Part shown: positions 325 through 50,559 of the stretch, in pieces
Layout: each line of letters starts with the position of its first letter
Numbering within the stretch: the first letter of the stretch is position 1
Assembly: GCF_000150275.1 (NCBI RefSeq)
Contig: NW_002060943.1
Span: 5,786,008 to 5,850,007 of the forward strand
Direction of reading: 5' to 3'
Length of the DNA stretch: 64,000 bases
From: Trichoplax adhaerens
Lineage: Eukaryota > Animalia > Placozoa
Translations under genes and position numbers: made by a program
The notes under the pieces: generated by a model
Databases searched by the model: none
Seen by the model: only the letters and a program-made list of their open reading frames with translations
What the model was told of the DNA's origin: nothing

Positions 325-3300
325 ATTAAATTTTACTATCATGCATATGGTTCAAGTTTGGGTAAACTTCAGATATATGCAATGTATCCAAGAATTAAGC
401 AATCAATATATCCTATCAAGAATGTTAGCTTCTATTCTCTTAATTCATGGCGCTCATTTTCTACAACATTTCGCCCACTTCATAATCCATATCGTGTAAG
501 TAATGTAACTTACCAGCATTTATCTTTGAACATAATCATTAAATAAATAATATGAGTAAATAAATAATGCTTGACTATGGCATGATATTAATAACTTGAA
601 TAAAATTGTCTAACTTCAAATATGCTAGATAAAATAAAATCATATTTCGATACGAAATCTACAGGAATTCATATGAGATCATTTATTTTCCATGCTGTAT
701 AACTAGGTTATTATTCGTGGAGTCGTCGGATCATCATTTAAAAGCGATATTGCCATCGATGATATCTTCGTCTCTGCAAATGGTAAATTATAAAAACAAT
801 ATTATCTAACATTCGTTGTTCGACAAGATTATTTAGCAATCAAGTCATACAACTATATTTTGACATACTTTTTGGGTACCTCATAAATAGAGAAGCAGTG
901 CTATACTCGGAATAATGATGTCTATCGAGGGTCAACTTCTACCACCCAGTCTGGTTTAACATGCCAATCATGGAGTTCACAGTATCCTCATTCTCATCCT
1001 TTTACTCCATCAAATTATTCTAACAGCGATCTTATATCTAATTATTGTCGAAATCCCGGTGGAGTGCGCAATGGTCCATGGTGCTATACGATCTCTTCCC
1101 ATCATTCTTGGGAATATTGCAATATACAACTTTGCGCTTCTCCACCTAGCAGCACAGCAGAGTACCCTTTAGGGGGTATGTTATGATATACTGGTAGATA
1201 ATTGAAATAAAGCTAATAATTGCAGTTAAGGACGCTGCATCTCTAATAATATAGATATTAAAATACATTACGCACTATGAGAAAATTTAAATTGAGTTTC
1301 ACTAGTAGTTAAAATGAAGAAAATTATCCTCGAGATCTATGTTAACCAAACATACAGCATAGCTTACAAATATAACTCTTTCGAATCATTGTATATAGCT
1401 TACTTTACTTTATTATTATCGACGACTTAACGATAAATATATTAATTGTTATTGATCACACGTGAGTATAAACACATGGTAAAATATTTTAAATTGAAAT
1501 TTATCATATTTCATTAACTTGCATACTTATATTTCTTACATCTTCATCTCTACGTAGTTCGCTATCCAGTTGCATTAGTTAATTTGGACGATGGTAATCT
1601 TAACGTGGGTCGCGTAGTTATTTATCATAACGGCAGATGGGGTACTATCTGTAAAACGGGACTATCAAATCAAATTATGGGTCTATTTTGTCAGCAAGCT
1701 GGTCTTGGAAACTCAGGCTCTCCACAGAATGGTAGGTTGTATCGCATCGTGGCATTTTATCCTTAATTATTAGTAATTTAACCGATAGATTGCAGTATTT
1801 CACTGTGATATTCGCATCCACATTCGCGTATTATATTTTTCACTAAGACCTACTAAATATATTGATTAGTAAGATTGTTAAAATAAAATCCTATTTTTAC
1901 TCGCTTGCTTTCTTTAGGAATCGTTAATAATAACCATGGGTTTATGTGGCTAGATAGTAACAGCATTTCGTGTTCATCAAACGCAACTTCCCTCATTCAT
2001 TGTTTTATGGGACCATGGGGAAGCACTTGCGGACATACTAATGATCTTTGGCTAATGTGCTCCGGCCCTTCTCCCATACTTCCACGTTAGTAAAGTTTGA
2101 AGAGGAGATAAATTGTTACAACTTCTGTCTTAATATCAAAGCAAACATCTTAAATTCCATGCATAACAGAAAAAAAAATTCCATCAACTATCCGTGTTGA
2201 TTGCTTTCTTACTTTAATTTTCTTTCTAACGCCTCTTCTACCAGCGATTCCGAGTTCATATCAGCTGTTCCTTAGAGGAGGATATAATTATTCTAGTGGC
2301 CGAATTGATGTCAATTATAATGGTCAGCCTGGTATTATGTGCTCCACATCTTGGGATATTTATACTGCAGATGTCGTTTGTCGCCAGCTGGGTTATGTTG
2401 GGGCATATTCTTGCAATTGTAAGTAATTTTTGAATTTCTCTATGTACTAAACATACTAAACTTGTTAAGGCGTGATACCTACTATGCGTAATAATGAATA
2501 TGAAGTACCAACTTGAGCCGCATAATCAAGCTAATAAGTTAAACTTTTCTAAACAGCGACAGCAATTTCAAGACCTTCAGGGCTAACTGCAAAAATTAGC
2601 TATATAAGATGTAATGGGTATGAACCAACTATCGATGGATGTACTATAGCAACCTCTAACTCTATTTGCCAGTCATCAAATATCAACGTTGTATCGTGTA
2701 GGCCAGGGAGTCCAAAAACTGGTAAGCAATCGATAATATTACTTCCTCTAGTAAGCCATTCTAGCGTGATGAAATCTTATACAGATAAATCACTGACTCT
2801 AAGCTTAAAGCTATACTCAAATTATCAAATTGTATTAATATAGTATTTAACCTATATGATTTTGCCATTCAGATAATTATAATGAGCCTGAAGATTGTTC
2901 CTTTCAAAACGGATTTTGCGGTTGGACAACAATAGGACCTGTAACTTGGATTTGGTACCCTAACGAAGTGGGACATTTCAACCCTTTTTCGACTCCTAGC
3001 GGTTAGTCGTAGTCGTAATTGAATATTTTAGCAATTGAATACCATCCACAAAAATACGCATAGGTATTATGGCTAAGAGTAAACTTCCGCGGAGTTATAA
3101 TCTTCCGTGATAAAATAAAATATAATTCCTAATAATTCAAAAAGCTTAATAATATCTTTCCGTTTTCTTTTTAGATATACCCTTTTTATATGTTTATAGG
3201 CCTTCTAGTGGCTCTGCTCCTATCTCAGCTTTGTTGACTAGTCCATTATTCACCGAAGAATCTTCAGAACAATATGTAATGAAATAGATTATATTTAGAC

Positions 3301-5134
3301 CTCATCAGTAAATATCGTTGATGAAATCCAATGTCACTGTTACGAAAAATGAATTGATTAATTATTTCCATAGATAACCTTCGATTACATTGTTACTGGT
3401 ACAGCCTTTGACTATCTGGAAATTAGTTACAAGCTAAGTAGCGGAAAGGAAAATATTATATATCAACACCGTATAGATACAACGGTATCAACTTGGACTA
3501 TCGCTTCGACTGACAAGATTGATACCGATGAAAGTTTCACAGTAAGTTTCACGAAGTTATTTACCCAATTCAAGATAAGATAACTGTCTATAGATTGCAT
3601 AATATATAAATGAGTACATAAGTTATTTATATTCACAACACTTGTACACAGGTAATTTATCCTGCATGTGATCTTAAAATAGCTAAACAATTTTAGGTGT
3701 AGTGATATAAACTATTAGTTACAGTAGCTTATATATAATATAATTTATCCTCTGATTCCAAAAGATTATCATAATTAATTCACTTCGTTTTTGCACATCA
3801 AGATTTACTTAAGCATATGGCTACTTTATTCAATTTAACTGTAAAAATTTATTTTAAATCATTAGATAAAAATCATGTGCAGATCAGTCAGCACTTCTAC
3901 GGGATCAGTTGCTTCGGCTATAGGAATTAGGAGAATAAATTTTCAAGATGAAAATTCTAAACATGGTTAGTATAAAGTGAAACAGCAAGATATACGAAAT
4001 TATTTTCGCAAGAAGATAGACATAGCTGCATCTATATCCAGTTTTAATATTTGCAGTGATTCTCATCACCTCTATCTATTTAGGACGTTTCCTCAATATC
4101 CCTGGTATTGCAGTAGGTTGTGCAATTGGTATCATAATTATTATATTTATAATTTTATACGTTTATAAAAGATCTCAGCAAAGGCAATCGGTAAATACTG
4201 TGGTTACTCCTTCGAATATACAAAGACAAACAACCAGGATTATTAATAGTGAACCATCAAATAGTCGAATTGATACAACAGCAACGAATAACTTAGCATC
4301 CACGACTATAAGTAAAAGAGTTATTAATTCGGCTTCTACTCCTGTAACTTCAGCCGCCCAATCATCAGGTAAAATTGAATAATTTATTTGCATTTGAAGT
4401 TTGCATATACTTTTATTAGTGCTGAGTTATCAATGGCTCTTATCTGTGACGTTCGCTTTATAATGTATTAGGTTAAATATGCTATTTATCTTAGAATTAC
4501 CTTATACCCGTAACTATACCTAATTGTTTGATATATTCCTTTGCATGTTGTATCTGCACATGTAAAATAGTCTGTTCTGACTTTAAGTCATCGCAAATAC
4601 TAGATAAACCGTGCATCTTTCGCTCCATTTACGACAACTTTTCCACCAATAACTTGATACTTACGATAGATAACCCCATAATTAAAACTGTTTAAAACAT
4701 TGGACTAAACAATTTATGTAATATATACTTTTAATTTATTAAGGAGTGATTTACCCAGCACCCTGTGGGATTTCTAATTCTGGCAATCGAGTCAATCAAT
4801 TTGGTTCCAATACTTGCTTCCATAGTAGTGAGCTACCTCATTCAGTTAACTGTAACGTCAATCCTGTTATGCCATTCCCAATGACCTCAACCGGTATGTT
4901 ACTGGCTTTCATAGCAATCATCTATTAAGACATTACATTTCTGTTTAATGTAATAAAATGAGAAAGAATTGTTTAATTTTAAATATTGTTTGTCTTGGTA
5001 AATATTAATATTATTTTCGTTATCATATTCTAATAGTTACAGTATCCTTTACCGATCCACCACCAAATTATGAAATAGCCATGCAACAACAAAACAATGA
5101 GCACGAGACACAACAGTGCAGTAATCGAACGTAA
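325..5134 (+). CDS. MAM-kringle-SRCR-SRCR-MAM single-pass receptor, paralog 1 (5' part lies upstream of the window)
   Basis: Phase-consistent GT-AG exons: 325-495, 707-782 (MAM end, DIAIDDI), 891-1175 (kringle CY..YRG..CQSW..NYCRNP..PWCY..WEYC), 1558-1731 and 1918-2085 (SRCR1, GRVVIYHNGRWGTIC), 2246-2418 and 2557-2721 (SRCR2, ADVVCRQLGY, CNGYE), 2873-3001, 3175-3275, 3374-3541, 3866-3965 (MAM2, CSFQNGFCGW), 4084-4368 (TM IAVGCAIGIIIIIFIILYVY then KR), 4744-4893, 5037-5134 (DPPPNYE...stop). Confidence 0.88.
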
Positions 5135-7956: not shown

Positions 7957-8079
7957 TCGAATAGAAACTTTTCTACTGTCTAAAATGATGCAAATTCATC
8001 CAGAACTTTATGAGCTCGTCGAATAGAAACTTTACTACTGTCTAAAAAGATGCAAATTCAGCCAGAGCTTTATGAGCTC
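7957..8079. repeat. Direct tandem duplication, ~61 bp x2
   Basis: TCGAATAGAAACTTT(T/A)CTACTGTCTAAAA(T/A)GATGCAAATTCA..TTTATGAGCTC occurs at 7957 and 8019. Confidence 0.9.
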
Positions 8080-9224: not shown

Positions 9225-12200
9225 ATGATTGACTTCCGTCAAGACATGATAATGATGTTACTACTATCCTTCCTACTTCTTACATCAAGTATCAATGGGA
9301 ATCAAGATGGCGATACGAATTTGCACCCAATACGTCGTTTTAAAAGATCGGGCTTTAATGTTACATCAGTCTATAACTTTACAGGTATGCAGGCTAAAAC
9401 GGAATACAACAAAATTCCCCAGGCTTGCTGTAGAACGCAATCGTACTAATTATTGCATAATTGGAGCCTTTCACTCTATTGTAAACTAATAGTAGAACAT
9501 AGATAGTCCATTAAAAATGACAGTAATGTTAGGGTTCTTGTACGATAAAATACATATGTTACCAATAATTTACTATTATTTACTCTTAAATCGGATTTAA
9601 AAAATCTCATTTATAGTTGTACAATAGGATAATACGTGTATTTTAACTGTAGGTTAAGTGCATTATTCAAAGATTTCTAACATCGAAATTGTATTTTACT
9701 AGTTCCACCGGTTTACTATTCTCACTGCAGCTTTGATAATGGTACTTGTGGCTGGAATCAATTACAAAACATTGATTTCTTTGATTGGACACGTCTCAAT
9801 ACACGCACTCCTAGTTCTACTACAGGACCTAATCATGATCATACTCAAGGCAACAGTAAGTGCGAGCTGCCATTAATAGTGCAACGTAGTAGGTACCTAT
9901 CTTATTCTATCATGTGAAAATAATCGACATACTTTCAAGCATTAACTGATTTAATAAATGACTTAAAATAAGTTTCTTACCTATTTTAACTTTAAAACAA
10001 TGCTTTTCCTTGATTACTTTTAACACAGGCTCTGGCTATTACATGTATATTGAAGCAACACAGAATAAACATGGCCAATACGCCGATTTAATTAGCCCTC
10101 CATTGTTGTTATCAGCTTTTGGCTCTAGTGTCCAGGTAGGAAATCATTAATAAATCAAGTTAGGATCGACTTAGACGGCAGTAAATGTCTCATTTTTCTG
10201 TCGTTCAAGATCGAAATTAGGCATAATTTACGGTTAAGATGTATCGGAAGGCCAGTTCGTGAAATTTTCTAAAATATTATTTTTGTTAATTAATTTATGT
10301 AGGTATCATTTTACTACTACGCTTACGGTGACAACTTGGCCGAACTTAGTATCTACGTGATGTATCCGCGATATGAGAGCGCCCCTATATTAATAAAGAA
10401 TATGACACTAGTTTCTAGACAAGCTTGGATATTAGCTGTTATTCCATTTAAACCGAAATATAGCACTTACCGAGTGAGTATTAACCAACCGATTGCAAAT
10501 ACGAATAGAAGATAATGCTAGAGTATCTACAACTGACAGTACCAATATGATCAGTATCTTGATTAGAGCCAGTTTTCATGTATAGATTTTCTCACTTAAT
10601 TACGTAATGAAATTGTATACTTGAAATTATTTTGGAAGCCGATATATTACTCTCTCTACAAGCTGATACATATTCGATATTACCGATAATATGCCTATAG
10701 TAAGATGACTCACTTGTTGAATAATAATATTGACATTATTTAATAGATCTTATTTCGTGGAGTTATTGGCTCTACATACTCTAGCGATATCGCTATTGAT
10801 GATGTTTCTGTTACTCCTATCGGTGAGCGACGGTAGTCATAGGTTATTTTGGTGGATACTTTAGCTTCGCAACAAATAGCCACGCGTTAATTTTTCAATT
10901 TTCAATGCTGCAATCACTTCACAGAAAGGTCTTGCTATACTGGTAATGGCGAATTTTATCATGGAACGATTAGGACAGCTGTTGGGGGACTCTCGTGTGA
11001 ACCTTGGAGTCTATTCAATACTACCTTTAATAATCAAACTGGAAATAATTTTGTTAAAAATTACTGCCGTAACCCTATCGGAATGGTTCGAAATCGGCCT
11101 TGGTGCTATACCAACTCGACCACAGGCCAATGGAAATACTGCAATGTAGAAAAATGTATTCGTCTTCCGATTTCTGGTTCAACCTATCCCCTTGGAAGTT
11201 AGTGCATGAGTTATTCACTTAAAGTTAATATAGACTTGCGAAAGTAATATTTCAATATTTTTACATCCGATGAAATATGTCCATTCGCTCATTTTAAACT
11301 TCTTATCTCATATGGCAATCACTATTACAACAATTATTGCTCGCACTACTTTACAATGATAGTTGTCACGGACTTGTTATAAGATTAATTTTTGTTTTAA
11401 GGTCGGGTTCCCATGGCATTCGTAGCCAATGCACGAGTAATACCTTATTTAGGTCGAGTGGTCGTATATCATGATGGTCAATGGGGCACTATCTGTAATG
11501 AAGGTTTAACAGATTTAAAAGTCGAATTAATGTGCCAAAGCTTCGGTTTTGCAAACTCTGGAATTTCGACATGTACGTTTTATAGCGGCGAAAAGCGATT
11601 CTATAACCTATACACTGTAGGCACATTCAATCGCCATAGGGCATAGAAAGTTCGCTGAAACTGTATTACATTAAAATTGAAGAAACTCGCATACTACATC
11701 GTAACCCAAATTTTATTTTTGCTGGTATTTATTTACACAGATAGTGGAAGGAAGAGCAGCGGACTAGTTTGGATAAACGCCTCCAATATCAACTGCGACC
11801 CCTCTATGTCAACTATACAAAACTGTGATTTCAATCCATGGGGTAGCTCCTGTTCAACTGATCTTGATACTTGGCTTATTTGCCGGTCTAAAACAGGTAG
11901 CCTATCACATTATGACCAATAAGATTTCTACTTTGATATTGTTACTTTCTAAGATACGAGTTTAAATGCAAAAGAAATAGGATTGAGATTCCGCTAGTAA
12001 ATTATGAAAAATTTGTAGATCTAGTTAGTGATACAGGTCATGTATGATAAAATGGCGGTGATACTGTTTTTTATGTTTCATTAATTCATGAAACATTAAC
12101 AATCATCGCTTAGTAATTATTTACTGACATTGATTGTTTAAGTTATCTTAATGTCTAACGAGTTATAAGCTGCAAGTGATATAAAATGGTGACGCATTGA

Positions 12201-14936
12201 TACAGGACAACACCGCAATTTATTAGCCATACACAAAACTATGAAAATTAATGATTTATTTGTATAGAGAGCAGTACCTCTTTTTCGCCTTTGTCATTAG
12301 CTCTTTGAATAAGTAACTTGATATTCTATGCGTAAAATCAATGACCAATGTTGTATTCTATCCAATAGCTACAGTATCGCCATCAACAATTCCTAGAAAG
12401 TCATACGATTTAAGTTTGATAAATAGAAAAAACACAACGACTGGTATTATCTACGCCAGTACCAGCGAAAATGGGTACCGGCATGGGGTCATCTGTCCTC
12501 GATCACGGGATATCAACGATGCTGATGTTGCTTGTCGACAGATGGGTTACCTTGGCGCGTATTCTTATTACAGTAAGTGAGAAAATATTGTATAAATACA
12601 CATGGAAAAGCCGATAAAGATATACTGCTATGGTTAACTCGTCAATTTTTAATCACCCAATTTCAGTTAACGTCGACAGCACTGCGACACAATCAACGTT
12701 GATTAACTCCATCAATTGCAAAGGCTACGAAAATTCAATCGAATATTGCCAAGTAACGGAACCAACAACCTCCAATACTTGCAACTATAATGATATGTTC
12801 GCTGTTTCATGCAGACCTGCACAAAAATCTTACAGTTAGTACTAGCTTGCGATAAAGTCCAAAATGTTTCTTGTTATCATAAAATCACGATGCAATATAC
12901 GAGGAATTATAAAGGTGTGCTCTTATTCCAATATCTAACGGTTTTCTACGGTTACAGCAACCTCAAACAAGCCTTCAAACTGTGAATTTCTTCATGGACA
13001 ATGTGGATGGAAAGCCAATGGAAATCCAACATGGATATGGTATGGTTCTTACCGAAAATATACTCAATTGGATAAATGTAAGATCTATTTATTTATTAAT
13101 GATGTATCCAGCTAGTATCTGATTATCCAATTACGAAGCGACTAATGCGATTATCATGATCTTTGATAGATGAATTTTATATACAATTTATAAAGCCAGC
13201 AGGCTACACAAAACCAATAAAAGCTGTACTAACTAGCCCGTATTTTCAACGAAAACAATCTGCAGTTTATGTAAGACCTTGCTATGTCAGCGCTATGGTC
13301 GTACTCCTATTCCTAATGAAGATAAATCTAACTTACTTTCTGTACGAACTTTTTTCAGGTTTCGTATTACTATTATTTAACGAGTAATGACTTTGACAAA
13401 ATAACGACAAGATACGGATACAAGGGATCTGTGTATACTTACAGCGTATACACATTCTATGTACCACAACGAAGTCTATACCGTTGGTATTATTCACGGT
13501 CAAGTTACTTCTATCCAAGCCGCGACTCATCATTTAAAGTAAATATGCGTACATTGCTACGCTATGAAAAAACATGATTTTAAAACTAGTCGAAAGTCGA
13601 TTACGACTTACGTTCTGAAAATAAACAAAATGCATAACGTACATTAGAATACAGCAATAACAAACTAGTTCAATACGTATCTTTGAAAACACTTGCAATA
13701 TTGTATTATCCTAAATCTTAAAATAGATTGAAATCGTCTGCCAGTCAAAAAGTACGCCTGGAAGTTCATCAGTGGGTGCTATAGGGCTAGATAATCTTTA
13801 TGTGCATGGCGTAGATGACGAGTCCGGTAAATTACTTGCAATGTCTTTACATCGATTAAAAATATTTCATTAACAAGGGCTTCTGATTAAGTAAATGGTA
13901 TAATCAATTTTAGGTTCAGGTCTATCTTCAAGTACTGTAGCCCGTATAGTAATTGGCTGCAGCGTAGGCTTTGGAGCATTAATAGTATATGCGATATTCT
14001 CTTACGCTGCAAAGAGGAGACGAAATCGCGCTGCTAGAAATGTTTCTCGTTCAGCTACGAGCAGATCGCGTAGAAACAATCTATCTTCTAGTGGAATAAC
14101 TAGGCTAACATCAGATGATAGTAGTTCAGCTCATGATCCGATGAATTTTAGCTCTCCGGTACCGCCACCAAGTACGCATAACCTAACTTTCTAAAATGAA
14201 ACTTTAAATTTATAGTTATTACAGTAAGGAAATCTTTATTGCACTATAAAGTCTAGTAAAAATATTCAAGAATCAATATTCTTTAACTAGGTGGTAACCA
14301 ATTTATGCTAACAAATACTATAATTTTAATTATTATGTAAAGTAATCATATAGGTCCTGACCTTACTATACTATTGCATCAATTAAAATATGAAATTTAA
14401 CTAAGACAATTTTACTTCTCTTATTTGAAAAACTCAGGCTATCCATCCGTAGTGAGCGACCAAAATACAGGTAAAATCTTTATAATATATTATTTCTTTA
14501 TCTATTCCTTTGTATATGATGTTACCCATAGATGAAAATGTTACTTGTCTTAAAAGATAGTTAACCTTATAATCTAAACTGTTATAATCTTTGTAGGCGA
14601 TCCAAATACATCCCAAACTTCGGCCTCAGGTAAAATATCATAGATATGTGAAACAAAATATTATTGGCCACTGATATAATTGCGATTGATTAAATTATTT
14701 ACTTTACTTAATCAGGAATTGCTACAGCTAGTGGAAATTCGCAAAATAATGATTCCAATTATCCAATGAACTCGAGTGCTCAGACACAATATGCAAATCC
14801 TGCAGGTATTGATAATAAGAAAGCGATTATTCCGGAATCCATCTTAACAAAAACTCTAAACTCCTGACGTTATTGAATTTTTCTTTTAGCAAAATTGCCG
14901 CCTCCACCATCCTATGATGATTCATCATTTATCTAA
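9225..14936 (+). CDS. MAM-kringle-SRCR-SRCR-MAM single-pass receptor, paralog 2 (complete, 18 exons)
   Basis: Exons 9225-9384 (signal peptide, RRFKR), 9703-9855, 10029-10135, 10303-10473, 10747-10822 (MAM1: CSFDNGTCGW, TGPNHDHT, GYYMYIE, LISP, DIAIDDV), 10925-11197 (kringle), 11402-11572, 11741-11896 (SRCR1), 12369-12572, 12667-12834 (SRCR2), 12958-13077, 13170-13270, 13359-13538, 13727-13826 (MAM2), 13914-14171 (TM IVIGCSVGFGALIVYAIFSYAA then KRRR), 14597-14629, 14716-14805, 14890-14936 (LPPPPSYDDSSFI*). Reading frame stays open across all junctions. Confidence 0.9.
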
Positions 14937-17275: not shown

Positions 17276-20200
17276 ATGGAGTACGTGATGGGCAGCTCAT
17301 CACGAAAAATAGTCATGCTATGGTTTATATCAATGATAACACTTTCTGCCAGCATTATTGTTGAAGGAGTTCATGAAAGCAACAGATGTCAACAATATCG
17401 TGAGAAACGGTGCCAATTTAATATTTCATCCGTTTATAGCTTCTCTGGTACGTGTTCGTCAAAGATTAATTTTTTCAGATTAGTTCGTGTCCCACATTCC
17501 ATCTTTACTGTCTCAAGGGGTAGATATTTCATAATAAATACAATCTCTAAGTTTCTTCGTAGTAGTACCTTGCTTGGCTCCATCAATCCGCTAGCTCAAG
17601 CAGTAAGGTACCTTACCTTACTATTAATTAAATTAAAACTAGGAACGAATTTATATTTCAGTTATTACATATTTACCGGTACTCAATCTATCTAAACGAA
17701 ATTATATTCCAATAAATGAAAAGAATTTCTTTTTCATCAGTTACGAAAACGACTAACGAAATGATTCTCTTTTTAACAGTCTCTCCAGTTTATTACACTC
17801 ATTGCAATTTTGATAGCGATACTTGCGGTTGGAGCCAACTGAAGAATATTGATTTCTTTGATTGGACTCGTTCTAAAGGCAGCCTTCCCAGTGCTGGTAC
17901 ACGATCACTGTATGATCATACACAAAATAATGGTTAGTTGCTTAGCTTAAAGTTAATATTTGACGATAGTAAACACAAGTGTAGCTAGTGAAACTGAACC
18001 GTACAAAACTGCTACACGTTCTGTTAAATATATATGTTACGGCCTACGCGTATTGGCCAACTTCGGGTTTTGGCCGTAACCTATGTTATACGTGCTCGAG
18101 CAAGTAAAATTGATATTTACGATTCTTTAATGAATCTTTGACAATTAGAAGTAATCCTATGGAAAAATTTAGAATAATTTAAGTTTGTATTATAGGTTCT
18201 GGTTTTTACATGTACATTGACGCATCGGTAAACAATTACGGAACTTATGCGGATTTGATTAGTCCACCGTTACAATTATCGGCAGTTGGTGATAAAATAA
18301 GGGTCAGCAATCCTATTCGTACAGAAATTGTACTTATGATTGTTTTCAATCTCTTACTAACAAACAAATAAACTTAAAAGCGATTGATGAAGATGAATTG
18401 ATAGTTAATTATTGTAATGCTATCGTAATCGACGATAGTCGTAGATCGCAAGTGTAAAAGAATTTTATGGCATGGCTAATCGTATGTTTGCGTTCATGAT
18501 CTTACACATTGTCCAATTCATTTTATAGATTTCATTTTATTATCATGCATTTGGTTCAAGCTTGGGAGAGCTTCATGTCTATGTTGTATATCCTAGGCAC
18601 GAAAACGCCTTCCATGTACTTCATAAGATTAAATCGAACTCTATAAATTCTTGGCGGCTGTATACAAAGAGTTTCACTCTCAAATACAGTACCTATCATG
18701 TAAGTAGCTAATAACAAATATGAATATGAGGACTTTGCCATGTCCATTTATATTATTTTTATTTAAAATAATGTATAAGCTCTGTCTTCCATAACTACGC
18801 AAGATTTGAAACTTAATAAATAAATATATTCAGAATATGTCACTAGCCTATAAATACTAAGTACTAATTAGTAAACTCTTATCGATCGTTCAATTTCTAT
18901 CGCATTTGATTTCCATTGCTTACTATAATGATGAAAAGATTTTACTTCGAGGAATGGTTGGATCGACCCACTCTAGTAATATTGCTATTGACGATATCAG
19001 CGTTTTATCAGTTGGTAAGGCTATAATTAAGTGTCGGATTATGCATCTACTCCATATGCCTAAGTTTCGTTACTGATCAAAAAATAAATTCTTTTTCTAT
19101 CATCAGAAACATCTTGCTACACCAGTCATGGTGAGTTTTACCGTGGAACAGAAAATTACGCCAGAAATGGCAGCGTTTGCCAAAATTGGCATTCTTTTAA
19201 TTTGACCACTAGCTACGCCACTGCTAACCATTTAATGTCAAACTATTGTCGGAATCCCCTTGGATCGACTCGAAATCATCCATGGTGCTTTACAGATACT
19301 TTAACACGTCAGTGGCAATACTGTAATATTTCTAGATGCAATCCATTGCTCATTCCTACTCCAGCCTATCCGTTGGGAAGTGAGTAAATGGATACATGAT
19401 TAATAGAATCGTCCTTGATTTTAAGATCGAAAAGGGCCTATTAAGCATAATACTCGTATACTACAATTTTTATTCATTTCTATTTAATAACATTTTACTT
19501 TACTTCTTCTCTAATTAAAGCTCCCTATCCGTTAAGTTTTGTCCACAATTTAGTAGAACAAACCAATGTTGGTCGAGTAGTTTTGTATCATAATGGACAG
19601 TGGGGTACTATATGTAGAGCTGGTTTAAAGGCCTCTACAGCTGCTCTCATGTGCCAGAGCTTCGGAATTGGCACCGTCGGACAACTAACGAGTATGTAAT
19701 TTTACTTGAGGCATGCAATGTTTCTTGTGAATCATTAACAGTTACGGAGATCATTACGCGTTACCATCATTACAATTAAACCTGTCTCGTGCTTTCCATT
19801 ACAACTATTACAGCTAATAGATATATAGGTGTTGATCCTGTTTGGCTAAATGGTTCCAGTATAAATTGTCAAAATTCGACATCCATATCGGCCTGTACTT
19901 TCAATCCTAGGGGCAGTATATGCCCTAATACATTGGATGCATGGATAGCTTGCAGTTATGTAGCAGGTTAAAACTAATATAAGTTCAAAAATGTCAAAAA
20001 TAATTCATGATTTGATATGGCAGTTACCATACCAGATAGCTAAATATCTTTTAGAAGCTATAAAGGAGATAACTGTTGTAGGTGCTATTAGTATACGCGC
20101 TTTGCCTATCATCAAATAAGTACGGTTGAAAAACTGGGAAGTAACAAGCTAGGATAGTAAATTAATTACCAGGATTTCATATTTTGACCTACTATAATTT

Positions 20201-28019: not shown

Positions 28020-31000
28020 ATGGGTTGGAAGATGAAATTCAATTCAAGGATCATCCTTTTTGCCACCTTGTGCATGATATTGTTGCACTATATCGTCGAA
28101 GGTTTACATGCTCGACGGCTTCGATATCGACAAAATCACGGACTCCATCGTAAGCGAAGATGGCCTACTGTTACTTCTTCCGATTATAACTTTGCAGGTA
28201 CATATGGACAAAATCGTTAGTGTCCTTATTTGAGTCTTCTTTGATGTCTGTCTCACTGGATAATAAAACGAGCATTCCCATGCATGAAATAGAAAGAAGT
28301 TAATTGGATGTATTTTAATCAAGCCTACTCAACGTTTTCAATCCTTGTCTAGCACAACCGGTTTTCTACTCTATCTGTAACTTCGACCTTGATACGTGCG
28401 GGTGGAATCAGCTTAAAGTCATCGATTTTTTAGATTGGGAACGAAAACTTCATCGACAGGAACATTCCCCTAGTAATGGTAAGTTGAACTTATATTTACC
28501 ATCATTCCGACCTGGATTTCACTATCGAATCAGTTTTACTTGGAGAAAGAGCGCTGTTCACTATTTCATGATCATGTTGGCAATTTCAATTTTTATTGCT
28601 CAGGTACGAATTATTTTATGGCCATTCAAGAGATGGAGGCCTATGTTGATGAATATGCCGATCTCATCAGCCCACCTTTGCTGCTGACTACGAATACTAC
28701 TAAAGTGAAGGTGAATAGGATGATCATAAGGTCGAACCTTTATATCCACGTTTACTCTTGTTCGTTCAAAACTAAGGCTAAGAGAATAGCTGTATCATCA
28801 TTTAAAATTATTGACACTGTCTTGCTGTAGCCATCTTATGCTGCTGAAGCCCAATGGTGCTTGCTTCCCTTAATGAATGCCAACATGCTCAAATTTTGTG
28901 GCAATATTTTCACTTAGGTTTCCTTTTCCTACTATGCAAATGGAAATTCCCAAGGTAGAGCTGACATCTTTGTTATGTACCCTAGATATGATACCAAGTT
29001 GTATTTAATAGGCAGAGTAACTCCCACTTCCCAACGAAATTGGAGACATTACTCCTGCCGGAGTTTCACACCAAAATATAGCCGATATCGTGTAAGTAAT
29101 TTAATAGAAACATTTGGACTTGAGGTCGACAAAACTAAGGAATACAGTGGAAATAATTGTGAAAGCGAAATTTTAATAATTTTCATGTAAAAAATGACGC
29201 TAGTAGAACAAAGTTCTGTGACCTTTCAAAGCGATGATCGGTTGAATATTGTACCAGTAAACCTGCTCTAGATCTGTACGTAGTCTATGCAATCTCTTGA
29301 CAAATTAAATCTCGAAAAGCCGTATGATATCAATCTACTAGGAATATCTGTCCTGTTTAATTAGTAAAGCTTTCCCTATCGCGTAGTCGATGCAGTGACT
29401 TTGACAAGTTAAATCTCGAAAAGCCATATCATTGCAGTCTACTAGGAATATCATTGCGGTATACATGTTTCAGAACCCAATTTCTCCGGTCATGATTAGA
29501 CTAGTCTACTGAAAGTTAAAAAATAGTTAAATTGTGCCCTATTCTCTAAAACGACATGCTTCAATGAAACATGGGTAGTATTAGGTACCATGGAATAACC
29601 AATTTCTATTTTGTATATCCATGCATATCATTGACTAAATCTAAGAAGTAATGTCCTTGCCATTGTCTTGAACTTTAATAACAACCTAATTCTTTACTAA
29701 ATAAAGATTATTCTTCGTGGAGTTCTCAGACAAGTATCACGCGCTAATAACTTTGCAATTGATGATGTAACGGTCATCCCAATAGGTAAGCCATGAATGA
29801 TTTCGATCAATAAGTCTTTGCGTATATTACCTATTTACTCGTGATATATCTTGATGACTTAGCGATCATAACAATTGATACTTCAATTTAGAAACAACTT
29901 GCTATACCAATAACGGCGAATTTTATCGGGGCTCCATCAGTACAACTGAGAAGGGCCAGCAATGCATATCCTGGAGTTCTAAATCGCTTGTGGATTCACA
30001 GTTTCACCAAACTAATTATTCTCATCCGACTTTGGTATCCAACTACTGCAGAAATGTAAATGGAACAAAACAAAAGCCTTGGTGTTATATCCATGAATCG
30101 AACAACAAATGGCAATATTGTAATATACCAAAATGTAATCCAATCCCTCCCACGGACCCGCCATATCCTTTAGGAAGTCGGCACTTTTTAAATTTGCTAG
30201 TGTCTTTTCTAATTTTTTTGCATTGTCGGTATACTGTAGAGATTGTTGAACTTTTCATAATTTTTTTATCACTTCCCAAGGTCGAAACCCGATAGCTTTA
30301 GTGAGCTACGATAGAGGTCTTCGAAATATTGGCCGATTGGTCATTTATCATGATAAAAAATGGGGCACGGTGCACAATGTTGGAATATCAGAAGCTGTTA
30401 TTGGTATATTATGTAAACACTTCGGCTTTGATGCAAAAGGATCCTTGTGGAGTATGTTAAGGCTGATGGAATAGACTAGTGTAACTGTAATAATTAAGTT
30501 CTCAATTTGTGATCACATCTCTATATTACATAAATTTATGATTAGAAAATGACTCTTGGTTTGAAGTTGAAGATCAACCTGTCTGGCTGAATTCTTCTAA
30601 CATCAACTGCCCAAATTCTGCAACGTCGTTGTCAGCATGCACTATAGGACCATGGAACAGCCCGTGGCGTAAATCAAGGGATATATGGATTGAATGCTAT
30701 TCTGTTGCTACATCTACTGGTTAGATAATCAATAGTTATGTCGAAAAATGTATAGTAATTTCTCGCCGCTGGGTGCTGACTGATGTGATGATGTAGATGA
30801 AATCAATTGACACGTAGCGTAGTGCCAAGTAAATTTATCTTTTCTAGTTAAACATGGTATTAGCATGCTATGCAATCATACACTACAGTTCAATATATAT
30901 TAATTGGCCAAAATGGTTGCAATCAATTTCTTAAATCGATCATTTTTTATGATGTTGACTAATTGGTATTAGATTTTGACTAATTCTTATTTACCGCTAG

Positions 31001-32933
31001 TTGCGTAATGATGAACTATTTTCATCTTTATCTATCAGCAGATTATACTACGATCAAATCTCCGCTGACTAATATGACAGTATCTCCAATCTTATCAAAG
31101 ACACCTTCAACACTTATTTCTTCATATTCTACTTCATTTAGCGTTTTAGCCAAGGCATATCGGCTATCTATAATGGGTGGAAAGAATGCGACTAGCGGTA
31201 TGCTCTATGTTAGAGGCAATAATCAAAATGGGACTGTCTGTTCGCCATTTTGGGATCTTAATAGCGCAGACGTTGTTTGTCGCCAAATGGGATTCATTGG
31301 CGCTTATTCCGTAAAAGGTTCGCCCTTTAATTCTATACAGCTTAAAGATTAACTAACTCATGATTATCATCGCTACGGTGATAAGCCAATAGTACTAAAT
31401 ACAAGTTATACATGTTGTAAATTATTATTAGTTGTTCTTCGACAATTCCCGATAACCTCATCCTTAATAAGTCGTATCGACTGCCATGGTTACGAAAGTT
31501 CAGTAAATCAATGCAACGTAAAAGCGTCCCTACATTCCACCGATTGCCCTTTGTCTGATATTGCTAGGATTTCCTGCAATGATGGACAAGAAAATTACAG
31601 TTCGTAACCGATATAGCTAATGACTGCATTTGATTAAGTTGAATTATTAATTATTTTTAAGCGTAAAGATAATTAATAAGTACCGGATTATGTACTATAC
31701 CACTAAATTAAATATTTTTTAGCCAGCGCAAACAATCCCTGCTATTGTTCGTTCAGTCACGGATTTTGTGGATGGAAAAATAACGGGAGTAGGAGCTGGT
31801 TTTGGCATGCTGCCGATTCAAGGAAGTACTCTATGCTACCCAATGGTAAAGTACAAATAAACAATACTGAAATACCCATTGAATTACTTGACTTCGAATT
31901 CTGTATCCTAAAAGAAAATGTTAAATGTGACAATGTACTATTTTGATTATATGATCTAATTGGCATCTTAGATAGATCGTATATTGCATTGCTAAAGCTA
32001 GAATCATTTGACGGTCCTCTTGAAGGGATTTTAGTCAGTCCACTTCTGAAAAGAGGTGGTTCATCGATTTACGTAAGAATTCTTACAGCAATTGTTTGAT
32101 CGTAGAATGAATTAGAAGACATTCAATGGATTTTTAGGAAATTAGTTGACTAATAGACGCCATCTTAATAACCGTATGTGTTGTAGGTAACTTTCCGATA
32201 TTATATCACAAGTTATACTTTTGATAGCTTAGAAGTCGAATATGCAACCTTAGATGGAAGCTTTTCGACCTTGTACCGTAGATTGCTTGATACTGGTGCC
32301 TTAAATACTTGGCATTTTAGCAAGACACTTCCGCTACCCGCTGGCTTATCGCCATTTCAAGTATGTTCTTTCTTGCGGTATTTTGTCAGTAAAATAAACC
32401 ATTATACATTGTGATTTGAAAATCTCACGATTTCTATTAATTACGAATTATTCATCAATGCTTTTCCAATGCTCAACAATTAATTATGACACTCGCTTCT
32501 GTTGTTAAAATATGAATTGATTTTTAGTCAATATGAAGAACAAATGACTATTTTGTTAAGTCTTTGTGGCTTTTTGTTAGATTCGATTTATTTGCAAGGC
32601 TGTAAATAATATAAATTCCTACAGAAGTGTTGTGGCACTAACTGACATGAGGATAATTGGGGCTCATTACTTAGACCTACGTGAGTTATTTTAGTAAATT
32701 TTAATTTGAGAGTTAGTGATCACTCTCCATGATATTTTCATACCTTCGTAAACTGGATTTTAATTTATAACATTGACATTATAGCGACGCCAAAGCATAG
32801 CTCTATAATTGGTATTACCGTTGGTTGCTCCATCGGTGTCATTATTATCGGTTTCCTAGTGTATTTCTTTTGGTCATCAATAAAACAGAAAAGAGATGAT
32901 GGACCTTCAGTTACAAGGACTTGTCGAGCATGA
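28020..32933 (+). CDS. MAM-kringle-SRCR-SRCR-MAM single-pass receptor, paralog 4 (short cytoplasmic tail, no PPxY)
   Basis: Exons 28020-28197 (signal, RKRR), 28353-28478, 28604-28710, 28918-29091, 29707-29785 (MAM1), 29892-30176 (kringle), 30281-30451, 30546-30719 (SRCR1), 31039/31042-31317 (S/T linker and SRCR2a), 31432-31599, 31723-31845, 31972-32072, 32187-32360, 32581-32680 (MAM2), 32785-32933 (TM IIGITVGCSIGVIIIGFLVYFFW, tail SSIKQKRDDGPSVTRTCRA*). Confidence 0.85.
29297..29452. repeat. Intronic direct repeat, ~52 bp x2
   Basis: TTGACAA(A/G)TTAAATCTCGAAAAGCC..TCTACTAGGAATATC occurs at 29297 and 29401. Confidence 0.85.
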
Positions 32934-43950: not shown

Positions 43951-44276
43951 AGAATCTCATGAAATTCGAAGATGCGGAGGAATAATTTAGAATTTATACC
44001 GTAATTAGCACTCTTAACGACCGGACTTTACTATATTTACAATCTTTCCGTTCAAAAATCTACGTTGGCCATAATTTATTCTTGATTGATGTAGTAACAG
44101 TATCTTCGTCCTCATGGCAGTCTTAATAATTTCGCTAATATCAATATTATCGAACTGCAATGACAAAGTAAAATGGCTAATTAAATTTTCTTTTATTTTA
44201 GTTAAATAAATATCAATAGTATTATTAAAAGCTTCAGGTGAAATCAAAATTTGTATACATGAAAAACTTTGATATA

Positions 44277-47200
44277 ATGTCAAAGATATTAGGTGATAGT
44301 TTATCCACGTTTATCTTATTAATATTGGAATAAATTCAAACTTCATATAGAACGAAGAAGATACAGACAACGGCGTTCCATTACAAGTCATGATTCATCT
44401 GTTTATCAGTTTGAAGGTATTGGATTAAATGCATAAATTAAATTTTAATATGTAATAATAATTCACGGTGTCCATAATCATCGCTTTGATTCATTACTTA
44501 TAATTGTAATGTTATCGTAATTCTAAAGAGCTACGGCAAAAGAATTTGAAAGTAATGGTTGATAGACATTAGATTTAGATAAATGGCATCAATCAAAAGC
44601 ATTATTAATTCTACATTATCATACTTATATCTTTCCTGCAACAGATTTATACGCATAAAATAATATCGTTATATCGAGATCTGATCTGAGCACATAATTA
44701 TTCTTGTTCTTAGTGAAACCCAAAGTGTTCGTGAATTGTACCTTCGATCAAGATAACTGTAACTGGAATCAGCTCGAAAGCATTGATTTTTTAGATTGGA
44801 AACGACATCAAAGCAATACTCTTTACAATGGTACAGGGCCAATTTATGATCATACATCAAAAAACTGTAAGTACTTTCAAGCATAACTGATATATAAAGC
44901 TATAATATACAAATAAATGCGTTATAGGAGCACCTAAATTATTTATTGCAGTTCATTGTCGTATATAAACGCTACCCAAAATTAGAAATCTGTTGTTGAA
45001 GAAAACAAGTAATATTATGCTAATTTAAAAAATCCATATTCCGCCAGTAATAATTGAAAATTTTAAATCGTGGATTCTAAAATTCGTAATAAACTAGCTT
45101 TAAATAAGCCAGATCCCAATTAGTGGACATTCACTGGGAATATTAGTTTCTGTGGTACTGAGACTCTAAATCAAGTAGCATAAAGTGCAAAGCAGCTCGT
45201 AGTATATTGGTCTCCTAAAAGATTTGTTTCCTATTTATTAAAAATGGAGGCTTTTTCATCTAAGAAATTGAATAAATTACTTCGATGTTGCTAAGCTACG
45301 TTGTACTCTTATGACTTGTACAAAATTACGAAAGGCAAACATAACTCTTAATATACTAATTACAACCTTGTCAAAATTACCCTTAATTTACTTTCATTAA
45401 TCAATTTTCTACTGCTAATTTAATCATAACCACTTTTCCATTAAAAAGAATTTGTTCAAGAATTTTACTGTAGCAGAAAGTCTTAAAAACATTTCACTCA
45501 AATTGATTTATACATTTAATTTCTTTTTAGTGATGTGGTACGCTTACTTAAAAGATTATTCGCCAATTAGAATTTACCGTATTTCATATGTATGCTAAGG
45601 ATTTATAATTAAACTAATCTGAGCTACGGTAGTGTTTTAGAATAGTGTTAACTTTAATGCCATAATTAATGTATATAAACTAAGCTCGAGAAGCTCGTCA
45701 GGCACTCTAACTGAAGTACTATATTTACGTACCTGACTCGATATATAATAGCGGACAATTTTAGCGATGCAGCGTTACACGAAAGTGAGAATAATTCTGA
45801 CCGATGACTCTATAAGATTATAGAAGATTGAGCGAAAAACGGATAACTACAGCTGCATTTAACTACACACATATGTATCATTGAGTACAAAACTGCTTAA
45901 TGTGATACTGTAATATGTAATAGGTTTTATAATAGTATAGACCCACCCATACTAAAAATTTTTTTGAAGCATCTTTAATTTCAGTTGGGTTACAATTGCT
46001 GACTATAATATATAATCATATTGATCGGAAGGATTATCCTTAAAAATTGGCAACTTGATTTAGCATGAATGAGACTATTAATCTTAACTAGGAGTAAAAC
46101 TAAATCCTGATATCGATTACCTGTTGTTAAGCAAGTTTTTAATTTTTGTTACTTTATTTTAATTTAATTGTGATCTTTCGATCAAGTTGCTTAATGATAT
46201 CATCATACTAATACCTTTTAACACTTATTGATATTTAAATTACAGCCTTCGGTTATTATATGTATATTAACAGTTCCAGTCTTGAAATTCAAAATCAATA
46301 TGCGGATTTAATTAGTCCACCATTATTATCACCTGGATATGGAAACGATATCAATGTAAATGGATTCTGAATAATTTTAACTATTATGATATGCATCATT
46401 TCTATAAAATAATTATACATTAATTTACTTGCCAGATTACGTTTTACTATCATGCCTATGGCGTATCATCTGGTAAACTCTACGTATATGCTATGTATCC
46501 GAAATATAGCGCTTCATTATATCTATTGGAAAAAATATCATTAATTTCAAGGAATTCTTGGCTGAAAGCATCAATCCAATTTAAAACAAATTACTCAGAC
46601 TATCGCGTAAGTTATTAATTGGTATCTGGAAAATATAAGTTAGGAATTGATTTGCTTACTGAAGATGGCTGATAATGTCATAAAATACCTATACTCTGCT
46701 CATAATAGATAGTATAAATGAACGACTTTAAGCATCGATACTATGCAGATAATATCTACTCGATCGATGAAATTGTGTAATGCCTGCGATTTTTATCCTT
46801 TGCATTATGAATGATTATATCAGCAAGGTTGATAAGATTATAAATATAAAGTTTCTTAATGCCTACCTGATACTATCAGCATTACTTAGATATAACAATA
46901 TACGTTCATAACGTTCTTGACCAATTCAGCACAGCCGTTCTGTCAGTTATCAATCCACTATTGTTACATTCAGGAAATTCAGATAAATATATTTATTATA
47001 TGTCGGCCACCTAATAAAGCATTACAGTATTTACTAATTACGCTTAGTAACTTTATATTGCCACGAAAATTACATAAAGCAATTTGCAATTTGTTAATAT
47101 TAAAATCTGGTCTAAAAAGAATTACTGGCGAATGCTTATAGATAATCATCAGAGGGGTTGTAGGCTCTAAAGTTGGTAGCTCTATTGCTATTGATGATGT

Positions 47201-50200
47201 CTTCATTCAAGCACTTGGTAAGAATATTTCCTCCTTCCTATATTGTTTATCTTTTTTTATATTGTGATATTACTTTAAAAATCTATTTTTAAAGCTTAAA
47301 TTAAAATTAAATGTATGTAAATTTCTGTTTTAGTTAATCTCAATGATTCTATATTATATTTAACAGAAAATAATTGCTTTAGTCATGAAGGCCAGCATTA
47401 TCGAGGTACAATAGCTGTCACTTCTGATGGCTACACATGCAAAAATTGGAATTCGGACTCTATTACATCCGTGTCATTGGCTTTATTGAATCATTCTATT
47501 GAGCACGATTTATCATCTAATTACTGCCGTAACCCATTCCGTAATCGATTAAAGCCCTGGTGTTATATTGAAAGCAACCTAACTAAATTATCCTGGCAAT
47601 ATTGTAATGTGCCTACTTGCAACTTTTCCAAAATCACAGTGACAGCATATCCACTAGGAAGTATGTCAGTCCTTTAATCTTGAATAGAGTTTTAAAAAAT
47701 TATAATAGCGAACATAGGAAGCCTGGATTCAAAGGTTGGCACTAATTACTCAACTTTTAAGATGAAATACTTATGATTTATCCTAGATAAATACCCTATC
47801 AAGATTGTTCAAAAAGATGGGCAAGATAAACTAATTGGTCGACTTGCAATTTATTACAACGGACGATGGGGAAGTATCTGTCTTAAGGGCATGACTGCAA
47901 ATATTGCTAGCGTATTTTGCCGACAAGCAGAATATGGAAATCAAGGATCAATCATTACAGGTATTCATGCTGACCTAATATTAAGTATATGGTTACCTTT
48001 AATTTAGTATTTGTAGTACTTCAAAAGATTGAGAGTCTACGGTAATGTAAGAAATTACACCAAATTAATAAGAAAAAATGGTAGTATTTGTTATAATTAG
48101 TATTCGAGGAAACTATGTTATGTTACAGTGGTGATGTATAACGTGACATAGTCAAATAACTATAGTAAAATGAAAGAGGTAAAGCATATGTAAGCTTACA
48201 GGCGAACTAGTAGAACTAAATAACTAAATATAGAAAGCATTATAGGAGAGAATTTACTTCTAGCCATGGAATAGTACTTATGAGAACTTAGTTCTATGTT
48301 AGTGTATTTCTACAGTATAATGGCACTAGAGTATAATTCATTATATTAAAAAAATTGAAAAGACGAGACTGAAGTATGTTAATAATACTGTTCGTTAATA
48401 GATGATAATATTACGATCGATAATTAGCAAGGCATTCACATTTCATATAAATAATATTCCTTATATTATGTCTTTAAGGCCGAGAGCAATTAAATTTTAA
48501 AGTTTCCGGAAGAATTTTCTAAAGCGCAATTTTTTTGAATTTATCGAAAAACTGAATTCTACCGATACTTAATTTATGCTATCACTCCGTATTTTACTAG
48601 TTATTTTCATAATATTTCGTTATCTAAATTCATACTTCATGTTGATAAATTTAAAGTTTCCTAAAATAGAGCTATTGTTTTACAAATTTTCCGTAATTCA
48701 ATAATTTACTAAGGTCTTTCCAAAGCGTATACAACTCTGTATTCTCATGATTACAGTGCTTCATCTATTTAGATTGGTTATTAATTAAAATACTGATATT
48801 TTTAGTTTTAAATCAAACCAAAACTACCGGGACAATATGGCTACGTGGGTACGATATTAAATGCCCATCCTATTCAACTGATCTGACACAGTGTATTCTG
48901 GGGCCATGGAATGCCAGCCGTTGTTGCAATCATTCTGAAGATGTTTGGATAAAATGTTCTCAATCGAATCTGATCGGTCATCAACCTTCGAAAGGTATGC
49001 TCCTACTGATACTACGGCAGTATCGCTTTCAATAAAATTAATAATTCCTACTATTATGCGTTCATCCCGGCAAAAATAAAATTTTTTTTTATTTTCTAGC
49101 TTTTAGTAATGATAGCTATAATCATTCAACCGCAACTATTGATACAATCGTTTATAGAGCAAATAATGAGGATACTTACGTTATTGGCATTGCTTTGGGT
49201 TGTGTCATTATCGGTATTGCTATCATTGCTTGGCTGTTAAGGTATTACATCAAATGTAATCAGAGAGTTAGCGCAAGTGGAGGCGCAGTCCAATGGTCTG
49301 CGAATAATTTAACTGTTGCCACTGCTACTTCAAGTGTTATTAATCGTCCGACCACAACAAATTCCAGTGATGCTGAGCTAAGGACCATGTATGCATCTTC
49401 AATAACCGGTGTCATTACGCCAAGTATGTGGGAAATGTTCTTGAAGTTAGCCAGAGTCTTATGAAATTGTTATGTAATATGATGATCATTGTAAACCGCA
49501 ATTCAATTTGCTTCCGGGATTTAATACGTGATTACACTTGAATTTGTTTTTCAGTATCATCGTCAAACAGAATCGCCAGCAGTGATGCATCATATCATGC
49601 ACTGAATAGAAGTTGTGCCAATCACAGACCTCAGCATAGTATGCGATAATATTAAAATTAATTTACTGATTGGAAAATCTATCGTAAATTATTCAGGACT
49701 AATACCATGTACTGTAAATAATCGATCGATAAAATGTACAACCTTAACTTGTAGATAATATGAATTTAATTGTCAGAATAGTAATTAAAAAAAAGTTCTA
49801 TACTTCAAATCAAATATTCGACCGATTTCTGTCTGTCATAAATCTTAATAGAGTGATTAATTCGTCCATCAATGGTCGATAAATCAATTTTCCTTCGCTA
49901 TTAGAAATGGCAAAGACAGGTGTTTTCTATTTTTAATGTAGCTGCATGTTGCAAAACACAATTCTACCTCAGCAATCCCAAACTATATTTTATTCTATCT
50001 TACAATATGTAATATTGATATCTAATAATACTGTATTCAGGAATAGTACTCTGAACTAATTTAAAGTTATGTGTTGTTTGTGCTTGTGTTTGCATTATTA
50101 GGTCACAGTATCCAAGCATTTCAGGATAGCAGCTCTCGATCAAGTTAGATTAACTCTTATAACGTACCATTCGCTACATCGAAACTGATTTCTTATTTCC

Positions 50201-50559
50201 TATAGCCTATGTAGAGGTATTTCTTATTGTAAGATAATTATATTTTTAGACGCAAGCTTTGCAGCCCCATACCAACCTCATTATGATCGTAAAATGAGTC
50301 GTATGACAGGTATGCAGTACCAGTCTATACCTGAGTTTAGAATCGATTAAGAGCGTAGCTATGTAAAATTCTATGACGCTATTTTAAAATTTTAAGTGAA
50401 AGAGATCATCCTGGCATACTACTAACACAAGCACTCTTTTCATTGTCGACATTTACATTCCTAGATGTTGTTTCTCTACCTCCAAGTTATGATGCTGTCA
50501 TGAAAATGAAGTTTCAGCAGAGAAAGGGAAGGCAAGGGAATGGAACAACTTCGACATAA
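44277..50559 (+). CDS. MAM-kringle-SRCR single-pass receptor, paralog 5 (lacks SRCR2 and MAM2; start unresolved)
   Basis: Furin segment RRRYRQRR/SITSHDSSVYQFE ends at the donor after 44416. Exons 44714-44866, 46246-46355, 46436-46606, 47142-47217 (MAM), 47367-47660 (kringle), 47787-47960, 48806-48994 (SRCR1), 49100-49423 (TM VIGIALGCVIIGIAIIAWLL), 49555-49638, 50102-50143, 50250-50309, 50465-50559 (SLPPSYDAVM...*). The body is intact, but the candidate ATG at 44277 hits a stop at 44331 and is out of frame with the furin segment. Confidence 0.8.

Follow-up and report, generated by a model that had tools for sequence, protein, structure and literature searches.

The nearest described counterparts of the genes considered here come from placozoans themselves. 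In Trichoplax sp. H2, 45 SRCR-containing transmembrane proteins have been counted, and 21 'SRCR + MAM or Kringle' proteins are listed as putative scavenger receptors, five of them with consecutive locus tags (Kamm et al. 2019, PMC6321704, Dataset S3A). The domain combinations of the H2 set are mostly restricted to the phylum, and its entry in that study consists only of locus tags and a class name (PMC6321704). A later paper restated the large scavenger receptor repertoire of Trichoplax and showed expression for cd36 only. Here we describe five genes, named A to E, arranged in tandem on the + strand of a 64,000-nucleotide stretch of the Trichoplax adhaerens (H1) genome (contig NW_002060943.1, positions 5,786,008 to 5,850,007; hereafter the window). 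The five genes belong to a family of type I membrane glycoproteins in the SRCR superfamily that has expanded by tandem duplication and is restricted to placozoans. As they encode SRCR domains, a predicted transmembrane helix and a MAM or kringle domain, they fit the definition of the H2 set, an assignment made by these criteria, the RDD accessions of the H2 orthologs not being linked to TrispH2 tags. Array and H2 set have in common the domain set, the transmembrane helix and a clustered, phylum-restricted expansion.

The first-pass annotation of the window had seen in the array its best candidate for an undescribed system. That view has to be abandoned, given the 21 H2 proteins listed in 2019 (PMC6321704) and the H2 orthologs already in GenBank (RDD37230 for A, RDD37228 for B, RDD37229 for C and RDD37231 for D). 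The family is catalogued in both the literature and GenBank and is not a new kind of system. A probable second MAM domain (MAM2), PPxY motifs in the tails, a furin-type site and corrected exons are incremental additions, which appear in no paper of the literature searched; in Kamm et al. 2019 (PMC6321704), neither the text nor the searched supplementary files refer to MAM2, to PPxY or furin-type motifs, or to exon phases. The literature search likewise returned nothing on array gene identifiers or on cell-type expression of the array genes.

Among better known proteins, neurotrypsin (PRSS12) has a kringle directly followed by SRCR, as in the array, but is secreted with a C-terminal trypsin domain, whereas the array proteins have no protease and instead carry two MAM domains, a transmembrane helix and a PPxY tail. 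Kremen1 and Kremen2 are single-pass kringle receptors driving endocytosis of the bound complex; their order, however, is kringle-WSC-CUB, and neither WSC nor CUB rose above threshold in Pfam searches of the array exons and orthologs. Class A scavenger receptors (SR-A, MARCO) are type II proteins with a collagenous stalk and a C-terminal SRCR, whereas the gene C product is type I and its 848 residues hold no collagen repeat. Class C scavenger receptors (SR-C) combine CCP, MAM and somatomedin B domains with a mucin stalk and are not known to have a kringle or SRCR. The insect members (SR-CI and SR-C-like, PDB 8yt7) are type I membrane proteins that use a MAM domain, and this MAM matches the first MAM (MAM1) of the array.

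Full-length matches were found only in Trichoplax when proteins were searched with an H2 protein and a three-sequence profile, searches that rely on shared words and a length window, so that absence elsewhere is not established; they returned neither Hoilungia nor any other placozoan genus. A search of 1.84 billion representatives with the kringle exon was ranked by summed score, and multi-kringle proteins therefore dominate it. Among the proteins retained from this and the first homolog search, MAM and SRCR profile matches were combined in only four, three of them the H2 orthologs. Mosaic amphioxus and sea-urchin proteins named 'DMBT1-like' or 'mannose receptor-like' (for example XP_019616170 and CAH1265180) have sub-cassettes in common with the array, namely CTLD-CUB-MAM-kringle-SRCR and kringle...SRCR3-MAM-SRCR2-MAM, in which SRCR-SRCR(-SRCR)-MAM is repeated. 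They are, however, much larger and include CTLD, CUB or ShK domains; a scan found no transmembrane helix or PPxY in them, and they cover 18-42% of the placozoan query in BLAST. By these sequence comparisons the likeness is one of shuffled modules, not of orthology.

The array itself was delimited by self-BLAST of stop-free frames, which yielded five collinear series of matching exons on the + strand, starting at about 325, 9.2 kb, 17.3 kb, 28.0 kb and 44.3 kb. Paralogous exons match one by one in the same order with E values from 1e-5 to 1e-32, mostly below 1e-8. Exon ends of A, B, D and E are projections from gene C with splice sites assigned in silico; in all 41 of their exons an AG/GT in the same phase lies at most 18 bases from the projected position, mostly at the exact base, and the joined pieces are free of stops. 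The ectodomain introns are phase 1 between domains, making each domain a phase-1 exon module. Pfam recognised MAM, kringle and two SRCR domains on single exons as well as on the H2 orthologs of B, C and D, and a transmembrane helix is predicted in all five genes, followed in the family by a tail of 20-190 residues. Neither protease nor kinase was found by Pfam on single exons and H2 orthologs, Trypsin matching none of them, and the gene C transcript ends at the stop of its last exon. Identity among paralogs is 31-47% per domain, lowest in MAM2 (31% mean) as against 47% in MAM1.

Gene C (17276..23844, + strand) provides the reference model, with its exon ends taken from RNA contig joints set to GT..AG. 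Its 18 exons (1 to 9 at 17276-17447, 17780-17932, 18196-18302, 18529-18699, 18939-19014, 19107-19379, 19521-19691, 19829-19966 and 20558-20728; 10 to 18 at 20810-20977, 21597-21719, 21803-21903, 22017-22196, 22417-22519, 22711-22947, 23367-23399, 23536-23655 and 23795-23844), when joined in a script, form an uninterrupted frame of 848 codons from ATG to stop. RNA was checked over 17860-23859 in contigs of four public runs. Fifteen GT..AG joints were each present in two or three of the runs X6, X10 and X11, each from a different study and one of them recorded as RNA-Seq; a single 3302-base contig spans the whole gene. The fourth run, X5, covers the introns and has no joints, and thus looks like DNA. 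Intron 13 is kept in one contig and removed in two others. Two joints are in silico: exon 1/2, which lies outside the RNA-covered stretch and agrees with the deposited H2 model, and exon 7/8, which is not among the listed joints. The RNA thus shows a single spliced transcript for gene C.

The first exon of gene C (17276..17447) encodes a hydrophobic leader and an REKR furin-type site, at which cleavage is predicted, and has no Pfam match. MAM1 (17780..19014) occupies four exons of phases 1-1, 1-0, 0-0 and 0-1 and was matched by Pfam MAM on three consecutive exons and in the H2 orthologs of B, C and D. The kringle (19107..19379; Pfam Kringle, 63 bits) is a single phase 1-1 exon. SRCR1 (19521-19691, 19829-19966) and SRCR2 (20558-20728, 20810-20977) each have six Cys and two exons, three of these four exons matching halves of Pfam SRCR. 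MAM2 (21597..22519), assigned by profile-profile alignment and the ESM Atlas, comprises 168 residues in four exons with the phase pattern of MAM1. The transmembrane exon and a cytoplasmic tail of about 190 residues follow (22711..23844; stop at 23842-23844), with a PPSY across the exon 15/16 joint (22941-22947 + 23367-23371) and a PPTY twelve residues before the end (23809-23820). With the leader at the N-terminus and the transmembrane helix near the C-terminus, the product has type I orientation.

Gene B (9225..14936, + strand) has the full architecture, and its H2 ortholog RDD37228 (864 aa) matches Pfam MAM, kringle and SRCR twice. Exon 1 runs from the ATG at 9225 and encodes the leader and RRFKR; MAM1 (9703-10822), kringle (10925-11197), SRCR1 (11402-11896), SRCR2 (12369-12834) and MAM2 (12958-13826) are followed by the transmembrane exon from about 13925 and a tail with two PPxY, the C-terminal one being PPSY at 14904-14915. 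Only part of gene A lies in the window (325..5134, + strand), with splice sites set in silico; its 5' exons are found 233-3389 bases before the window start. The H2 ortholog RDD37230 (957 aa) maps to the gene at 90-100% identity. The part in the window begins with the third coding exon of MAM1 (325-495, 707-782) and runs through kringle (891-1175), SRCR1 (1558-1731, 1918-2085), SRCR2 (2245-2418, 2557-2721), MAM2 (2873-3001, 3175-3275, 3374-3541, 3866-3965) and the transmembrane exon (about 4084-4368) to tail exons at about 4743-4892 and 5036-5134, the last with PPNY at 5060-5071. In the H2 ortholog of A an extra LRRNT-like, Cys-rich cap precedes MAM1 and there is no canonical furin site; this LRR-like cap is confined to the gene A ortholog and is not seen in B-E.

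Gene D (28020..32933, + strand; H2 ortholog RDD37231) has the full ectodomain architecture, with leader and HRKRR, MAM1 (28353-29785), kringle (29892-30176), SRCR1 (30281-30719), SRCR2 (31150-31599), MAM2 (31723-32680) and the transmembrane exon (32785-32933). Its tail is short, and its SRCR1 retains only four Cys, two having been lost. Gene E (44260..50559, + strand) is a short form modelled in silico only, with MAM1 (44714-47217), kringle (47367-47660), a single SRCR (47787-48976), the transmembrane exon from 49100 and a last exon (50465-50559) containing PPSY at 50479-50490. Exons 9-14 are absent, so that SRCR2 and MAM2 are missing and the one SRCR is followed directly by the transmembrane exon; the frame is kept despite this loss because all flanking introns are phase 1. 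As assembled, exon 1 of gene E is broken: the ATG at 44260 opens a hydrophobic frame of 24 codons that ends in a stop at 44331, and RQRR is read in a different frame, open from 44323. Within 1.8 kb no in-frame combination of ATG, donor and acceptor would join a signal-peptide exon to the RQRR exon.

Much of the first-pass annotation is borne out by these models. Five co-oriented paralogs with conserved exon boundaries and phases are present, as seen in the five + strand series of one exon order and in the agreement of the 41 exons of A, B, D and E with the gene C projection. The second MAM that it had read is most likely there in divergent form, going by its alignment to MAM1 with hhalign, its phase pattern and the ESM Atlas. 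The proteins are non-catalytic as claimed, judging from the exons, the orthologs and the gene C stop, and the gene C exons belong to one transcript (15 joints, three studies); as no protease or kinase follows the gene C tail, no protease is joined to them. Lineage restriction and diversification also stand, in that full-length relatives appeared only in placozoans in the protein searches and the paralogs differ to the extent given above. Other claims apply to part of the array. The order MAM-kringle-SRCR-SRCR-MAM-transmembrane-PPxY is that of B, C and A (whose N-terminus is outside the window) but not of E, without SRCR2 and MAM2, or of D, without PPxY. Signal peptide and furin site occur together in B, C and D, but the A ortholog has no canonical site and in E the RQRR is out of frame with the ATG of exon 1. 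Finally, two SRCRs of six Cys each had been expected; six of the nine SRCRs have six Cys, but the second of A and the only one of E have seven, the first of D has four, and E has a single SRCR.

The SRCR domains of the H2 orthologs of B, C and D score 78-95 bits with Pfam, in two stretches each, which places them in the SRCR superfamily. Group A SRCR domains are about 100-110 residues long with six Cys and two coding exons, whereas those of group B have eight Cys and one exon. All nine SRCRs of the array are split over two exons, and with six Cys in six of them they are of group A type. In the kringle, the NPD-x-D positions read NPL-G-S in gene C when aligned to plasminogen kringles, and the plasminogen-type Asp55/Asp57 lysine-binding pair is absent in all five paralogs; lysine binding of the plasminogen type is improbable for this domain. 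The solved MAM of the insect SR-C-like scavenger receptor (PDB 8yt7) is matched by MAM1 with E 2.8e-15.

The membrane-proximal domain gave no Pfam match on single exons, and the B and D orthologs matched MAM in one stretch only, that of MAM1. A profile of the four MAM2 copies nevertheless aligned to the MAM1 profile over 148 columns (hhalign probability 90%, E 1.4e-6), and the four MAM2 exons repeat the MAM1 phases (1-1, 1-0, 0-0, 0-1) with similar lengths. For residues 450-622 of an H2 ortholog, 24 of the 30 nearest ESM Atlas clusters were MAM-only (feature score 0.91), and the Atlas model of MAM2 superposed on MAM proteins (enteropeptidase, ALK/LTK, meprin-like, neuropilin) with TM-scores of 0.72-0.77. 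The domain is most likely a divergent MAM.

A predicted furin-type site, R-x-K/R-R, is aligned after the leader in B, C and D, and E has RQRR. At the other end of the protein, PPxY is present in four of the five genes (PPNY in A, two motifs each in B and C at aligned positions, PPSY in E). By a rough estimate the chance of PP.Y in a random tail of such size is about 1%, and on this reckoning PPxY is far commoner in these tails than chance would give. Class I WW domains classically bind PPxY, as in ENaC-NEDD4-2, and a genome scan found WW-domain genes, including a three-WW cluster.

Between H1 and H2, the DNA is 99.2-99.3% identical over 26 kb, introns and spacers included (NOWV01000261.1:35455-62018 against window 7287-33780), the alignment being interrupted for about 0.5 kb in the spacer that separates C from D. 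Comparison with the models above shows that in the deposited H2 model of C part of MAM1 is missing, as is the SRCR1/SRCR2 junction, and that the model of D (RDD37231) has its first MAM2 exon in the wrong frame. The H2 automatic names, such as 'MAM and LDL-receptor class A domain-containing protein 2' and 'Hepatocyte growth factor-like protein', are best-hit labels. Orthologs differ by 21 non-synonymous and 9 synonymous changes, a ratio of non-synonymous to synonymous differences per site (pN/pS) of about 0.66; non-synonymous sites differ by about 0.4-0.65%, similar to the 0.7% divergence of introns. From these few data (30 substitutions), the comparison indicates weak constraint on the orthologs, and shows no sign of hypervariability between them.

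On balance we lean towards the array proteins being endocytic scavenger-type binding receptors sorted via PPxY, WW domains and ubiquitin. In such a scheme the ectodomain would be a multivalent binding surface for particles or macromolecules (microbes, debris, food-derived material). The PPxY of the tail would recruit WW-domain proteins, most plausibly NEDD4-type ubiquitin ligases, leading to ubiquitin-dependent internalisation and lysosomal delivery. We favour this reading because the kringle lacks the Asp pair, MAM1 resembles an SR-C-like MAM, PPxY is enriched in the tails and constraint is weak; the divergence of the paralogs, together with the pN/pS, is as expected of fast-evolving surface binders. 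The class of putative scavenger receptors in Kamm et al. 2019 provides a precedent. Several points count against it. Gene D has no PPxY in any + frame from 32.9 to 44 kb, and genome scans for WW and HECT domains did not pin down a NEDD4-type C2-WW-HECT gene, though such domains exist. The pN/pS rests on only 30 substitutions. The acidic cation-binding cluster that we take to mark MARCO/DMBT1-type SRCRs is presumably not conserved in the array SRCRs, and ligand binding may therefore differ from that of classic scavenger receptors.

Since PPxY also binds YAP-type WW domains, the same tails, with two PPxY conserved in B and C, could suit signalling co-receptors in which the kringle and MAM ectodomain captures a secreted ligand in the way of Kremen, ROR or MuSK, and the tail signals via Hippo (YAP-type) WW proteins, not endocytosis. 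Kringle membrane proteins do exist, and the ROR2 kringle was among the PDB matches. We consider this unlikely, however, as WSC, CUB, Frizzled and kinase modules are all missing from the array proteins, the searches gave orthologs in placozoans only, and a dozen or more fast-diverging, weakly constrained tandem copies are ill-suited to a conserved developmental pathway.

The presence of two MAM domains per protein suggests a further role, in cell adhesion or self/non-self recognition through homophilic MAM contacts like those of RPTPmu or meprin oligomers, and tandem diversification with module variants and the H1/H2 pN/pS would fit it. However, non-synonymous differences between H1 and H2 are close to the intron value, and there is no sign of hypervariability of the allorecognition type, the polymorphism data examined being that comparison and a few contig variants, which leaves this role only a small chance. 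It is also improbable, and decidedly so, that the proteins dock or regulate secreted proteases or digestive enzymes at the membrane, using a kringle-SRCR pairing without a catalytic domain to hold or clear enzymes in external digestion. The kringle-then-SRCR order is that of neurotrypsin, H2 pipelines name relatives 'Neurotrypsin', 'Plasminogen' or 'HGF-like', and MAM occurs in meprin and enteropeptidase; yet these names were assigned automatically by best hit, the Asp pair through which plasminogen kringles bind lysine is absent, and the window shows neither a protease domain nor an evident partner. That the array is decaying, most copies being non-functional duplicates, is very improbable: the frame break in exon 1 of gene E with the loss of six exons, the two missing Cys in SRCR1 and lack of PPxY in gene D, and the weak constraint could be so read, but the modelled exons have open frames and intact splice sites throughout gene C, in exons 2-14/15 of genes B and D, in exons 2-8 of gene E and in that part of gene A which lies in the window; RNA from three studies shows gene C spliced, and pN/pS is below 1.

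Related genes extend beyond the array, forming with it a cluster of some dozen or more over roughly 185 kb. Kringle matches on the contig span 5.68-5.87 Mb, where 13 of the 35 in the genome (105.6-Mb assembly) are found. The 140 kb around the window, searched with gene C exons, contain three more genes of full architecture upstream, further kringle-SRCR genes, and minus-strand MAM-kringle-SRCR cassettes downstream. Also upstream are two + strand genes with SRCR2 and MAM2 exons only (contig 5757879-5758497 and 5764178-5764739, 28 kb and 22 kb from the window), which thus retain the half that gene E has lost. Some 3 kb downstream of the first of these is a C-terminal PPSY frame. C-terminal PPxY open frames stand beside other genes of the cluster, not joined to gene models, and TRIADDRAFT_51917 maps just past the window end at 91-100% identity.

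Other features of the window lie between and beyond the receptor genes. Between C and D, adjacent segments (25856-26528 and 26811-27135) are 82-88% identical at the protein level and accompany a two-copy 166-bp repeat; they have no Pfam match, and the H2 annotation has no gene there. Some 11 kb between D and E (33000-44000) is very AT-rich (28-31% G+C) and free of family-related exons. Past gene E, a 299-bp tandem repeat (51409-53128; 5.8 copies, 95% matching) has units with open frames of 58-59 codons and four Cys that are mutually 81-100% identical and match nothing in Pfam. An open frame at 56380-56688 matches cytochrome P450 (Pfam p450, E 2e-13), so that the array is succeeded by a different gene; near it, at 57848, is a frame ending in PPSY that probably has nothing to do with the receptors. 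A 69-bp tandem repeat (62527-63235; 9.8 copies, 85% matching) overlaps Trp-rich + strand open frames. Elsewhere in the assembly, contig C1404 (650000-777000) carries a very large minus-strand cluster of complete single-exon MAM domains, with more than 60 matches of up to 150 bits within open frames that reach 3548 codons; a single kringle lies among them.

A bolder proposal, which we put forward tentatively and with more doubt than confidence, is that PPxY-tailed, furin-processed, dual-MAM receptors arose in placozoans as a new means of taking up microbes or digested food under the control of ubiquitin. In that case the array would exemplify live exon shuffling, in which phase-1 modules are dropped or kept to give an N-terminal half (gene E), a C-terminal half (the two upstream SRCR-MAM genes) and triple-cassette forms, each perhaps tuned to a different cargo.

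For one placozoan receptor family, the locus now offers an RNA-checked reference model that corrects public gene models, and its value is for annotation and for the design of experiments, in which the PPxY for sorting, the furin-type site, the hidden second MAM and the natural module-loss variants may serve as handles. Placozoans are not known to have adaptive immunity, and they digest externally before uptake. This makes large private families of surface-binding proteins obvious candidates for recognising food, microbes and symbionts.

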